DNA from: Octopus sinensis
Lineage: Eukaryota
NCBI RefSeq assembly: GCF_006345805.1
Contig: NC_043006.1
Span: forward strand, 50,902,001-50,966,000
Direction: 5' to 3'
Length of the DNA: 64,000 nt
Shown here: positions 7,710-26,957 of the stretch, one piece after another
How the letters are laid out: the number at the start of each line of letters is the position of its first letter
How positions within the stretch are numbered: position 1 is the first letter of the stretch
Notes under the pieces: model-generated
What the model saw: only the letters and a program-made list of their open reading frames with translations
Told to the model about the DNA's origin: nothing
Database searches by the model: none
Program-made: the position numbers and the translations under genes

Positions 7710-7926
7710 TTAATATGACGTCATTGTCAAATTGAATTGCGACATCAGTTTCTTGTAACCTTCAATGTCTGGCTTGTTAGCATTTTCGGGTAAGACGAAG
7801 CCGTGGCCTTCCAAACTAAACTTTTGTGCATCTCTGCCACACACAAACGGTTTATATGCATTTCCATATTCTTTTGGTATTCCAAACCACAAGTTTAAGT
7901 TACACATTTGGTCTGTGTGCTCGTAT
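7710..7926 (-). CDS. PHM-like exon 12, terminal coding exon ([15 protein letters not shown]...TSY*)
   Basis: Acceptor ATATTTTTAG phase 2; DQMCN aligns to DEMCN (CuM Met); TAA at 7710-7712. An internal weak donor cannot be fully excluded. Confidence 0.85.
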
Positions 7927-25900: not shown

Positions 25901-26957
25901 TCTCTCTCTCTCTCTCTCTCTCTCTCTCTCTGTATATATATTCAAATATGAATTAGAAATAGCTCAAGTTAAATAAGCAAAATCGAACACATACACAAGG
26001 CCTGTGTGTGTATATGTATTGTTAGTTCGTGAAACGGCTGCATTATAGGCACAAGGGAATATATTTTCAATGCGCCTGATGTTAATATAAACTGAATCTC
26101 CGTCTTTAAGTTTTTGGGGAGAGGACTAGTCGATTACATCGACCCCAGTGTTTCACTGGTACTTAATCTATGGACCCCGAAAGGAAGAAAGGCAAAGTCA
26201 ACATCGGCATAATAATAATAATAATAATAATAATAATAATAATAATAATAATAATAATAAAAGATGGTATAGGCACACACCAGAAAAGGTCACAGAAAAC
26301 GAGAAAGCAACCATACTCTGGGATATGCCGATACACACAGATAGAGAAATTAAGGCCAACAGACCAGATATAGTTGTCAGAGATCATGAAGAAAAAAATG
26401 CTTTGTAATTGATGTATCAATACCGGCAGATGACAACGTGTCTCTAAAAGAAATGGAGAAACTCTCAAAATACAAAGACCTGGAAATAGAGGTAACTAGA
26501 ATGTGGAATCTGAAAACAGAAACAATTCCTATCATAGTAGGTGCATTAGGCATGATAAAAAATATTCAGACAAATACATAACAAAAACACCAGGACTTAC
26601 AAACACATATAACATACAGAAAATTGCACTACTAGGCACTGCACACATCCTACGCAGAACACTTTCCATACAATAACCATCAGAGCATCACAACAAATCA
26701 CAGCACATACCCAAGGCACACAGAGTTGCGCTCGGTAGTGAAGTGAAAGCACGCTATAAAAATAAAACTACTGAATAATAATAATAATAATAATAATAAT
26801 AATAATAATAATAATAATAATAATAATAATAATAATAATAATGATAATGATAATAACTTACGCCATCCCAGGCATCGTTTGGGACTGTAATTTCTTGGAT
26901 TTCACCTGCCGAGAGCACGAATACGCAGAACGAAACGAACAGTTGTATCGTAGACAT
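7710..26957 (-). CDS. PHM: Spliced 12-exon gene: secreted monofunctional PHM-like copper type II ascorbate-dependent monooxygenase-fold protein, divergent paralog, 334 aa
   Basis: Exons 26862-26957, 25669-25720, 23831-23918, 22327-22421, 20324-20395, 19713-19770, 17333-17397, 14199-14279, 12621-12697, 12454-12507, 10979-11028 and 7710-7926 all have GT-AG boundaries and matching phases, and sum to 1005 nt with no internal stop. Translation: [334 protein letters not shown]. It is colinear with the PHM catalytic core motifs (FxP..TVHH..GC, W.C...C, WA..AP...LPK, VLQ.H, HxH, RC...G..DEMCN). The symbol denotes the family, not proven orthology. Confidence 0.9.
8104..8610 (+). mobile_element. Non-autonomous Helitron/Helentron-like element
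   Basis: ACTAACACCATGACCTGGCGTTGCCGG start; CTTATAGATATAGAGAT end. Confidence 0.55.
10183..10400 (+). mobile_element. tRNA-derived SINE, family B (AAGGCGGCGAGCTG...GTTCAAATTCC...GAGGTCGACTTTGCCTTTCATCCTTTCGGGGTCGA)
   Basis: Many copies on both strands: about 15120-15280, 24800-25195, 26045-26210, 30530-30950, 46860-47270, 49160-49375, 50780-50955, 51895-52112, 52950-53175, 53480-53730 and 61200-61345. Confidence 0.9.
10979..11028 (-). CDS. PHM-like exon 11 ([16 protein letters not shown])
   Basis: Acceptor TTTTGCAG, donor CGG|GTATGT, phase 0-2; RC motif. Confidence 0.88.
12454..12507 (-). CDS. PHM-like exon 10 ([18 protein letters not shown])
   Basis: Acceptor CATTTTTAG, donor GTATGT, phase 0-0; fills the AFYPVEHPVDVTFGDIL segment. 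Confidence 0.85.
12621..12697 (-). CDS. PHM-like exon 9 ([25 protein letters not shown])
   Basis: Long pyrimidine tract plus CAG acceptor, donor GAG|GTATGT, phase 1-0; aligns to KVVSGYRVRNGQWTLIGRQNPQLPQ. Confidence 0.9.
13746..13885 (+). ncRNA. Penelope-type hammerhead motif with a microsatellite-expanded loop II
   Basis: TAAC-CTGAAGA-GTGGCTATATTTA...(CTA)n...TAAATATAGACAC-GAAA-CACATG-TC-GTTA; stem II pairs 12 of 13. Confidence 0.6.
14199..14279 (-). CDS. PHM-like exon 8 ([26 protein letters not shown]; CuM HxH motif)
   Basis: Acceptor TATTTTAG, donor TGG|GTAAGT, phase 1-1; HSH aligns to HTH. Confidence 0.92.
14322..15100 (+). mobile_element. R4/Dong-like RLE non-LTR retrotransposon 3' fragment (decayed)
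   Basis: Translates to ...[17 protein letters not shown]...[13 protein letters not shown]...R*PDIVL...IDIA...IVGALG...LLGTARIL: CCHC knuckle plus restriction-like endonuclease motifs. Confidence 0.85.
16815..17242 (-). mobile_element. Mariner remnant (transposase C-terminus plus TIR)
   Basis: Minus strand [46 protein letters not shown]; terminal TATTAGGTTGTCCGGAAAGTTCGTGCCGATTTT is a mariner-type end. Confidence 0.85.
17333..17397 (-). CDS. PHM-like exon 7 ([21 protein letters not shown])
   Basis: Acceptor TATTGCAG, donor AAG|GTAAGA, phase 2-1; aligns to QPLIAGMYLM...IPPGEK. Confidence 0.9.
18898..18963 (-). ncRNA. Minimal Penelope-type hammerhead motif
   Basis: Minus strand CTGATGA-GAACC(CAGTAA)GGTTC-GAAA-ATCGAT-TA with palindromic stem III AATCGATT; stem I is imperfect (AATGATG/CATCATT distal pairing). 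Confidence 0.6.
19713..19770 (-). CDS. PHM-like exon 6 ([18 protein letters not shown])
   Basis: Acceptor TTTCTTATAG, donor GAG|GTAAGT, phase 1-2. Confidence 0.85.
20324..20395 (-). CDS. PHM-like exon 5 ([23 protein letters not shown]; CuH His retained)
   Basis: Acceptor TTTTTCAG, donor GTAAGT, phase 1-1; aligns to GFRVG...YFVLQVHY. Confidence 0.9.
20784..21036. repeat. Foldback palindrome with arms of about 100 bp (MITE-like)
   Basis: CATTTTCTTTTTG...CCTAAAATTTTCGT versus ACGAAAATTTTAGG...CAAAAAGAAAATG. Confidence 0.9.
21421..21816 (+). mobile_element. Non-autonomous Helitron/Helentron-like element
   Basis: Starts ACTAGCAGTATCGCCCTGCGTTGCCCGGG and ends CAGCTTTATATATAGAGAGAT; the same end architecture occurs at 8104-8610 (+) and 47964-48409 (-). 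Confidence 0.65.
22327..22421 (-). CDS. PHM-like exon 4 ([31 protein letters not shown])
   Basis: Acceptor TTTGCAG, donor AAG|GTATGC, phase 2-1; aligns to WFCDEGTC...YAWARNAPPTRLPK. Confidence 0.9.
23071..23584. mobile_element. pogo/Tigger-like MITE
   Basis: TA|CCGTAATTCCTCGGGTATAATCCGCAC on the left versus GGGCGGATTATGCTCGAGGATTTAC on the right (imperfect TIRs, right tip lost). Confidence 0.7.
23831..23918 (-). CDS. PHM-like exon 3 ([28 protein letters not shown]; HH motif reads RH)
   Basis: Acceptor TATACAG, donor TG|GTAAGT, phase 1-2; aligns to DFKPRASMDTVHHMLLFGC...W. Confidence 0.88.
23990..24285 (+). mobile_element. R4/Dong-like 3' end fragment between (AAC/AAT)n tracts
   Basis: ...[41 protein letters not shown] plus 3' UTR and (AAT)n tail. 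Confidence 0.75.
25207..25392. repeat. Near-perfect palindrome centred on AAACGCGCGTTT
   Basis: Arms AAAAGTTAGGGTA...ATGTAAAC / GTTTACAT...TACCCTGACTTTT. Confidence 0.9.
25669..25720 (-). CDS. PHM-like exon 2 ([17 protein letters not shown])
   Basis: Pyrimidine tract TTTTTCAG acceptor, donor GTAAGT, phase 0-1; aligns to PHM DTYFC segment. Confidence 0.85.
26259..26775 (+). mobile_element. R4/Dong-like 5'-truncated copy inserted in (AAT)n
   Basis: [41 protein letters not shown]...IDVSIPAD...KYKDLEIE...IVGALG...[13 protein letters not shown] with two frameshifts; (AAT)n on both sides. Confidence 0.9.
26862..26957 (-). CDS. PHM-like exon 1 (ATG, signal peptide [18 protein letters not shown]...)
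   Basis: ATG at 26957, hydrophobic N-terminus, donor GGC|GTAAGT phase 0. Confidence 0.85.

Follow-up and report, generated by a model that had tools for sequence, protein, structure and literature searches.

Among dicopper monooxygenases of the non-coupled type, peptidylglycine alpha-hydroxylating monooxygenase (PHM) and DBH are the textbook cases. The six copper ligands, which in rat PHM are three histidines at the H site (CuH: H107, H108 and H172) and two histidines and a methionine at the M site (CuM: H242, H244 and M314), are described as invariant and each as essential, and debate about PHM has concerned the delivery of electrons from the H site and the closure of the domains. In the 1OPM complex, the substrate is contacted by Tyr318 and Asn316. 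Here we describe a PHM-like gene of Octopus sinensis that lies on the minus strand, from position 26957 to position 7710, of a 64,000-nucleotide stretch of DNA which we call the window (C10:50,902,001-50,966,000 of the 2.72-Gb assembly). The gene is intact and conserved, and its sequence predicts a secreted-type protein of the PHM fold that has a full CuM site and two of the three H-site histidines, and that is without the residue anchoring the carboxylate of the substrate.

The most closely related systems that have been described provide the frame for this comparison. In rat PHM, R240 forms a salt bridge with the substrate carboxylate (PMC12164859), Q272 hydrogen-bonds the CuM ligand H242, and electrons are proposed to follow the path H108-Q170-water-substrate. 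The rat and human enzymes (1PHM, 1OPM, 1SDW) share with the octopus protein a two-domain beta-sandwich (Foldseek TM 0.72-0.84, 23-24% identity). Like rat PHM, the octopus protein has the CuM ligands, H108 and H172, Q170, N316 and four of five disulfides; unlike rat PHM, it carries H107R, R240G, Y318N, E313Q and Q272E, has a residue other than Tyr at the position of Y79, lacks the C47-C186 disulfide as well as the PAL domain and the membrane anchor, and ends in a tail peculiar to its own subfamily. Engineered rat H107A (6ALV, 5WJA) resembles it in missing one ligand while the other five are present, and chain D of 5WJA is among the best matches to the predicted octopus model. The mutant, however, has Ala at position 107 and keeps R240 and the whole peptide pocket, whereas the octopus protein has a conserved Arg, along with many second-shell substitutions that cephalopods have fixed (Y173A, G174P, L246M, G247A and A291M). 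DBH, tyramine beta-hydroxylase and MOXD1 belong to the same copper type II monooxygenase superfamily (TM 0.59-0.62 for human DBH) but differ in having a DOMON domain and all three H-site histidines; since DBH-type substrates are without a C-terminal carboxylate, the fold can serve non-peptide substrates.

Gene structure, active-site residues and fold

Spliced mapping yielded a 12-exon gene that starts with the ATG at 26957, ends with a TAA at 7710 and encodes 334 amino acids. All introns are of the GT...AG type with pyrimidine-rich acceptors, and the translation is identical, letter for letter, to the O. sinensis protein XP_036362534.1, which NCBI names [quoted passage not shown]. An initial annotation, made from the DNA letters alone, had described a frame of 12 exons with canonical splice sites and no stops, and both the mapping and the RefSeq identity bear this out. 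The exon model was built from a database ortholog, as rat PHM matched just 3 of the 12 exons by tblastn; a whole-genome six-frame Pfam search did not list the gene, the single exons being too divergent.

Residue equivalences were derived with phmmer against the rat PHM chains of the PDB (E ~1e-23; chain position plus 44 gives the rat number), and a MAFFT alignment of 135 PHM-type domains returned the same ones. Exon 1 (26862..26957, 96 nt; all exons on the minus strand) encodes the initiator Met, the signal peptide and the mature N-terminus and is followed by the donor gtaagt, and exon 2 (25669..25720, 52 nt) encodes C38 (rat C81) and the equivalent of Y79. Exon 3 (23831..23918, 88 nt) carries R62 (codon CGT, 23883-23881) at the position of H107, next to H63 (H108) and C69 (C114); exon 4 (22327..22421, 95 nt) encodes C81 and C88 (C126 and C131); and exon 5 (20324..20395, 72 nt) encodes Q126 (Q170), H128 (H172), the cephalopod-specific motif 'HAP' and M133, a residue invariant among cephalopods. 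The CuH triad is therefore incomplete, with only H63 and H128 in place. The CuH domain ends in exon 6 (19713..19770, 58 nt), which includes a sequon at N136, and exon 7 (17333..17397, 65 nt) encodes the linker and the start of the CuM domain. Exon 8 (14199..14279, 81 nt) encodes C183 (C227), W185 (rat Y229, part of a subfamily signature), G196 (codon GGA, 14220-14218) in place of the salt-bridging R240, and H198 and H200 (H242 and H244). E228 (Q272) lies in exon 9 (12621..12697, 77 nt), which is followed by exon 10 (12454..12507, 54 nt) and by exon 11 (10979..11028, 50 nt), with C250 (C293) and F262 (rat I306, again of the subfamily signature). Exon 12 (7710..7926, 217 nt including the TAA) contributes H266, Q269 (E313), M270 (M314), C271, N272, N274, C292 (C334) and the subfamily C-terminal tail. 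With H198, H200 and M270, the His-x-His...Met of CuM is complete; of the two residues that contact substrate in rat PHM, N316 is kept as N272 and Y318 is replaced by N274.

Both codons lie where the initial annotation had placed them, as do H63, H128, H198, H200, H266, Q269, M270, N272 and N274. HMMER comparison with rat PHM confirmed the substitutions that it had listed (H107R, R240G, Q272E, E313Q, Y318N) and the residues that it had considered retained (H108, H172, H242, H244, M314, Q170, N316). Its replacement of Y79 by Val holds in the MAFFT alignment, where V36 falls at this position with the cysteines in register, but the ungapped HMMER alignment puts H34 there instead. The extra His to which it had drawn attention, H266, exists but does not set the protein apart: 19 of 68 canonical PHM domains have His at the same place in the alignment, and the idea of a special new ligand was rejected for this reason. 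The eight mature cysteines (38, 69, 81, 88, 183, 250, 271 and 292) correspond to rat C81, C114, C126, C131, C227, C293, C315 and C334, so that the four disulfide pairs it had counted are indeed four of the five disulfides of PHM.

The predicted protein passes the Pfam gathering cut-offs for both halves of the fold (PF01082, 32.1 bits against a cut-off of 30; PF03712, 53 bits against 23). An AlphaFold2 (AF2) model was obtained with pLDDT 92 and pTM 0.89, with low pLDDT over residues 1-20. In a Foldseek search of the PDB, rat PHM accounted for each of its best 29 matches (TM up to 0.84), and human DBH came next. Across rat PHM conformers the TM-score changes monotonically, from 0.82-0.84 for the citrate-bound conformers 6ALA and 5WJA_D, both of them copper-deficient, through 0.77-0.80 for standard open PHM to 0.72-0.74 for fully open forms. 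The sole hydrophobic segment is N-terminal, signal-peptide-like and encoded in exon 1; hydrophobicity and Pfam analysis of the 334 residues revealed no membrane anchor and no PAL domain. With one such segment and no second, the protein looks secreted, as had been proposed.

A mollusc clade and the order of its losses

A tree of 85 PHM-type domains places the octopus protein outside canonical PHM/PAM, in a distinct clade that comprises 16 sequences and has a long stem (SH-aLRT 99, stem 0.42); the protein clusters with PHM and not with DBH. Every named member of the clade is a mollusc: a chiton (Liolophura), scallop, Tegillarca, Mytilus, unionid mussels, Haliotis and cephalopods. They share an architecture of about 330 stand-alone amino acids with a signal peptide, no PAL and a common C-terminal tail, C..DA....P..S, and are set apart from canonical PHM by a signature consisting of L110S, Y229W (16/16), I306F (15/16) and loss of the near-universal Y173. 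The octopus protein carries this signature as S65, W185, F262 and A129, and its tail reads CGRDAQKF...LPENANKPD. Within the clade, seven cephalopod sequences form a nested group (support 100, stem 0.61) from which H107 is absent in 7/7.

The relatives outside the cephalopods (chiton XP_064609811, scallop XP_021371408, Mytilus, unionids, Haliotis and Tegillarca) match the octopus protein in length, architecture, signature and tail, and most are likewise without R240, which is G, A, S, F or Q in most members of the clade, Haliotis and P0123 being the exceptions. The chiton, scallop, Mytilus and unionid members keep all six copper ligands. Haliotis differs in combining L107 with R240 and Tegillarca in having K107, while cephalopods alone combine R or N at 107 with the motifs 'HAP' and 'HTMA'. 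Since R240 is absent from most members and all six ligands persist in several of these proteins, loss of the carboxylate anchor is old and a property of the clade.

The residues lost from the octopus protein are widely conserved elsewhere. Among the 135 PHM-type domains, H107 is found in 120, R240 in 113, Y318 in 122 and E313 in 131, and each of H108, H172, H242, H244 and M314 is missing from a single domain (134 of 135 have it). The correspondence of residues is thus not a matter of chance. The tree shows at least six replacements of H107, of which five, independent of one another, left the other five ligands in place: in cephalopods (R/N), Tegillarca P0006 (K), Haliotis P0017 (L; a sequence that covers four Haliotis species), the sponge Sycon ciliatum P0108 (D) and the metagenome sequence P0110 (N). 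Because it was lost repeatedly while its five partners remained, H107 seems, from these alignments, to be the single copper ligand that is expendable across the PHM family and the one that is naturally dispensable. The sixth loss is that of P0015_d1, in which five of the six ligands are replaced and the branch length is 1.78. P0015 itself (1116 amino acids, Logan assembly) contains two PHM domains, the first without R240 and the second fully canonical. The first domain resembles the octopus protein in its PHM fold and in the absence of H107 and R240 (the latter replaced by S), but it is also without H108, H242, H244 and M314 (QQ/FF/V), which the octopus protein keeps; judged by its sequence it is clearly an internal pseudo-domain, and gives a picture of what true loss of metal function would look like.

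Orthologs and paralogs allow the changes to be placed in time. The O. bimaculoides ortholog XP_014770957 is 87% identical and has the same 12 exons, and the O. vulgaris assembly contains the same 12-exon, 334-residue open reading frame (ORF) with 5 nucleotide and 1 amino acid differences, exon 3 being 100% identical. In three Octopus species, therefore, neither the ORF nor any of the 22 splice dinucleotides has been disrupted. The deposited O. vulgaris model of 304 amino acids (P0002 = CAI9727953.1, OX597822.1) could suggest a different or broken gene, a possibility that we rejected: the DNA is intact and the model is an annotation artefact with a wrong first exon, mis-called exons 10-11 and an exon 10 that was missed though intact in the DNA. 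A second copy, paralog B, lies on the same chromosome 45 Mb from the window gene (paralog A), at C10:5555753-5581249 on the minus strand. It corresponds to O. vulgaris P0161 and O. bimaculoides P0155, has D at 316 and keeps Y318; at position 107 the O. bimaculoides copy has Asn, and those of O. sinensis and O. vulgaris have Arg.

Full-sensitivity HMMER searches recovered full-length relatives with 48-51% identity on intron-less RNA-seq contigs of 1.1-2.6 kb. The runs SRR23936170, SRR25097168 and SRR20545806 derive from whole hatchlings of Sepia esculenta (PMC10571815, PMC9538352), and the cuttlefish orthologs are spliced and expressed. All nine decapodiform protein variants, those of the hatchling RNA-seq included, read V-R-H-I-S around position 107. 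S. esculenta has two copies (tx1 and tx2), 84% identical with dS ~0.12, which are either paralogs or very divergent haplotypes. The Sepia variant P0154 equals copy 1 except in the CuM strand, KITKFGFEHTDQMCDFYLF, where it equals copy 2; this mosaic could be an assembly chimera or a gene conversion at the active-site strand.

Two other sources of Arg107 were considered and rejected, the second of them as a general explanation. An assembly error at R62, with CAT as the true codon, is contradicted by CGT in the assemblies of O. sinensis, O. bimaculoides and O. vulgaris and by Arg in paralog B and in cuttlefish RNA; given these three assemblies, the paralog and the transcripts, Arg107 is neither an error nor private to Octopus. 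Coleoids edit their RNA heavily, and A-to-I editing of CAU to CIU would be read as Arg. As a general source of Arg107 in the RNA-derived cuttlefish sequences, editing (CAU to CGU) is improbable in view of the genomic G in Octopus and of the decapodiform variants, of which 9/9 read RH and none HH; in tx3, moreover, codon 107 is CGA, the unedited form of which would be Gln and not His.

The changes did not arise as a single event in this gene: R240 was lost clade-wide and H107R came later. The distribution of residues over the sequences places the loss of R240 at or near the origin of the mollusc clade, and the change of H107 to Arg on the coleoid stem, before both the octopus/cuttlefish split and the octopus A/B duplication. 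As to whether the two substitutions are fixed in orthologs, Arg107 is common to Octopus and decapodiforms, with Asn in paralog B of O. bimaculoides, but position 240 is not fixed, being G, A or S.

The database name implies an ordinary amidating PHM. The PHM fold, both Pfam domains, N316, Q170 and CuM are all consistent with this name, but Gly has taken the place of the carboxylate-bridging R240, Asn that of Y318, Arg that of H107 and Gln that of E313, positions that are conserved in 113-131 of the 135 PHM-type domains, and the protein belongs to a separate, long-stemmed clade. In addition, the genome contains a canonical PHM gene on C16 (~4.399-4.424 Mb), in which AHHILLYGC, LVLQIHY, FSYRTHTHSHGK, NPQKPQ and NNEMCNFYVMYY are each preserved; another gene of the PHM type is found on C12. 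Peptide amidation in octopus would be carried by the canonical C16 gene. We consider it extremely improbable that the window gene encodes an amidating enzyme; with R240, Y318 and H107 gone and a canonical PHM elsewhere, the earlier proposal that it does not amidate very probably stands.

Constraint, copper and substrate

If the protein does not amidate, what it does instead must be judged from what selection has preserved. We tentatively favor, with somewhat less than even confidence, the reading that it is a redox enzyme which still binds copper and acts on a substrate other than a glycine-extended peptide. Copper would be bound at CuM and probably also at the H site, with its two His and the conserved Arg beside them; the enzyme would depend on ascorbate or another reductant, its substrate would be neither a glycine-extended peptide nor carboxylate-anchored, and electron delivery would be slower than in PHM or differently routed. 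In support of a metal-dependent role, only 29% of the columns are invariant among the seven cephalopod sequences, yet all five remaining ligands (5/5, P ~0.002) and all eight cysteines (8/8) are, together with Q126, E228 and the four disulfides. An H site still in use would be expected to keep H108, Q170 and H172, as this one does, and their presence weakly suggests such use. The origin of such an enzyme would be a neofunctionalisation of a PHM-like gene, as we infer in agreement with the initial annotation.

Several observations weigh against this reading. In rat PHM, the mutants H107A, H108A and H172A each have no more than about 5% activity; on the favorable side, they still bind two Cu per protein and remain fully coupled, and the H107A/H108A double mutant alone binds one Cu (PMC12164859). 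In H107A crystals without added copper, CuH is missing (PMC6123673). Retention of H108 and H172, taken alone, is weakly significant (P ~0.03-0.09). The positions of the pocket vary among the cephalopod copies (240 G/A/S, 313 E/Q, 316 N/D, 318 N/S/Y), a drift that is unlike a fixed substrate pocket and fits a non-catalytic metal-binding role equally. An exact-protein look-up in the assembly collection found no Octopus transcripts. Finally, recent divergence is close to neutral: maximum-likelihood (ML) GY94 estimation put omega (dN/dS) at 0.89 in the Octopus pair and at 0.78 in the Sepia pair, neither of them significantly different from 1, and at 0.83 when pooled (p = 0.33 against 1), and the coding sequence (CDS) of the Octopus pair has diverged by 6.6%, nearly as much as the introns (7.4%).

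The last of these observations invite the explanation that constraint has been relaxed, that the gene is heading to loss in Octopus and that its conserved features are historical. The Octopus-pair ML omega is not different from 1, the CDS diverges almost at the intron rate, the look-up returned no Octopus transcript, and the NG86 method puts the omega of the pair at 0.96 for the C-terminal domain and at 1.97 for the tail. Over the whole comparison, in which O. sinensis and O. bimaculoides differ at 66 nucleotides and 44 amino acids, NG86 gave 0.68 (bootstrap interval 0.40-1.34), a value that is understated relative to ML fitted with kappa and F3x4. The pattern of change within this same pair nevertheless argues for constraint. 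With 7.2 gap openings per kb in the introns, 7.2 indels would be expected in 1,002 nt of CDS and 0 were observed (P 7e-4); no stop codons have arisen (P 0.06), and 44/44 splice-site nucleotides are kept (P 0.035). Sites were also divided into conserved and variable classes, each assigned from the other lineage. Omega was 0.57 for the conserved class and 1.57 for the variable class in Octopus (heterogeneity p = 7.5e-4), and 0.39 and 1.14 in Sepia (p = 2.9e-4), the variable-class values being not significantly above 1. Sites conserved in decapodiforms thus evolve more slowly in Octopus too.

Deeper comparisons point the same way. Over five cephalopod sequences a codon model gave an omega of 0.236, and fixing omega at 1 cost 102.9 log-likelihood units (likelihood-ratio statistic 205.7), with dS saturated on the deep branch. 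The same ORF occurs in O. vulgaris, all remaining ligands and cysteines are retained, and the expressed Sepia copies are equally near-neutral, which marks the rate as a property of the family and not as a sign of decay. A dN/dS near 1, which had been named as evidence against a functional gene, is thus found in the recent pairs (0.78-0.89), where constraint shows only at the conserved sites and in the kept reading frame, but not across cephalopods (0.24). The gene is constrained despite its near-neutral recent average. Loss in progress we regard as improbable, and the earlier statement that this is no dead pseudogene agrees with the intact ORF and splice sites of three species, the absence of indels where 7.2 were expected, the omega of 0.24 and the expressed cuttlefish orthologs.

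The chief alternative is a pseudoenzyme: the PHM scaffold and CuM would have been retained so that the protein could bind, buffer or deliver copper, or associate with a ligand or partner, either within the secretory pathway or outside the cell; the H site would no longer transfer electrons and there would be no defined substrate pocket. The low activity of single H-site mutants of rat PHM, given that H107 is lost, fits this explanation, as do the loss of R240 and Y318, the drift of 240, 313, 316 and 318 while the metal ligands are fixed, and the many sites that evolve near neutrality. A positive charge has replaced the ligand in cephalopods (Arg) and Tegillarca (Lys), but the other losses of H107 are to L, D and N, so that charge replacement is not general. 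Copper-deficient PHM variants can take a closed conformation (PMC6123673), and 6ALA and 5WJA_D, both citrate-bound and copper-deficient, give the best fit to the AF2 model; this is a hint at most, since domain orientation in AF2 models is not reliable evidence. The invariance of H108 and H172 speaks, weakly, in the opposite direction, as these residues would be expected to drift if CuM alone mattered, and the clade members outside the cephalopods that have six ligands suggest a catalytic ancestral role. On balance we think a pseudoenzyme somewhat unlikely.

The loss of H107 does not imply the single-copper chemistry that the initial annotation had named as one option. Rat H107A binds two Cu, and H108 and H172 are invariant in the cephalopod copies; what the missing ligand does argue against is turnover of the normal PHM kind. 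A stricter version of the favored reading, a copper-binding enzyme with another substrate, would hold that an active PHM-fold monooxygenase has existed in coleoids since before the octopus and cuttlefish lineages split, on the order of 250-300 Myr ago, with an electron-donor copper held by two His beside a conserved Arg and with no carboxylate anchor. As far as the sequences allow a judgment, we deem this version unlikely.

Related genes, the rest of the window and significance

Beyond the PHM-type genes on C10, C12 and C16, the octopus genome contains a tandem cluster of at least 4-5 DBH/MOXD-like copies, on both strands, at C8:101.74-101.99 Mb, and a single DBH/MOXD-like copy at C1:157.82 Mb. 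The C8 and C1 genes have the motifs VHH...C and EMC.AY..YYP, and by these sequences the C8 cluster is an expansion of the family's sister branch in the octopus genome.

In the window itself, an open frame of at least 215 amino acids with a hydrophobic start occupies 63355-64000 on the plus strand and runs past the window end. It continues in Ala/Pro-rich tandem repeats (APASDFAKAVALE APASDHAEAVALE), has no Pfam match, and possibly represents exon 1 of a repetitive secreted protein adjoining the PHM-like gene. Long (AT)n arrays of about 280 and about 700 copies lie at 44228-44775 and 45115-46486, where the GC content of a 2-kb bin falls to 0.16, and positions 1-4000 are largely a (TA/CA)-type microsatellite with strong GC skew. 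Short interspersed repeats, whose translations recur, are found on both strands within the introns. Stretches resembling repeats or retroelements occur at 10066-10308 (minus strand) and, on the plus strand, at 14499-14690, 15150-15287, 24817-25222, 26130-26408 and 51007-51339, and include retroelement-like ORF fragments. Pfam gave no match for seven other ORF-like stretches of the window, repeat fragments among them.

The gene carries an automatic annotation, and the mollusc clade is unrecognised: no paper was found on the gene, its accessions, the named mollusc relatives or the clade, in a collection of papers that lacks most subscription journals. Within the same collection, no support was found for a role in shell matrix or biomineralisation, and papers on copper exposure in Sepia do not mention the gene.

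The finding should interest chiefly specialists in copper enzymes, for whom it offers a natural PHM without H107, and mollusc biologists, for whom it brings a PHM-like clade that had not been recognised. A long-lived lineage that lacks H107 and has a fixed Arg would supply ready-made variants with which to probe the role of the third H-site histidine, and the wider clade, which keeps both copper sites and lacks the carboxylate-binding Arg, would supply enzymologists with further natural variants. If the stricter version of our reading were true, the octopus protein, together with the losses in abalone, clam and sponge, would show, by examples from nature, that a His3 CuH site, though called 'essential', is not obligatory, and such proteins might use the closed, near-binuclear state that is debated for PHM, on a substrate that is not a peptidylglycine. 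Were the protein inert, it would still be a clean example of ligands surviving the re-use of a metalloenzyme scaffold. For annotation, a mollusc protein of this clade that is labelled 'PHM-like' or 'PAM-like' should not be taken for an amidating enzyme. For the biology of molluscs, the clade points to a copper-dependent modification or a copper-handling function that has not been described.

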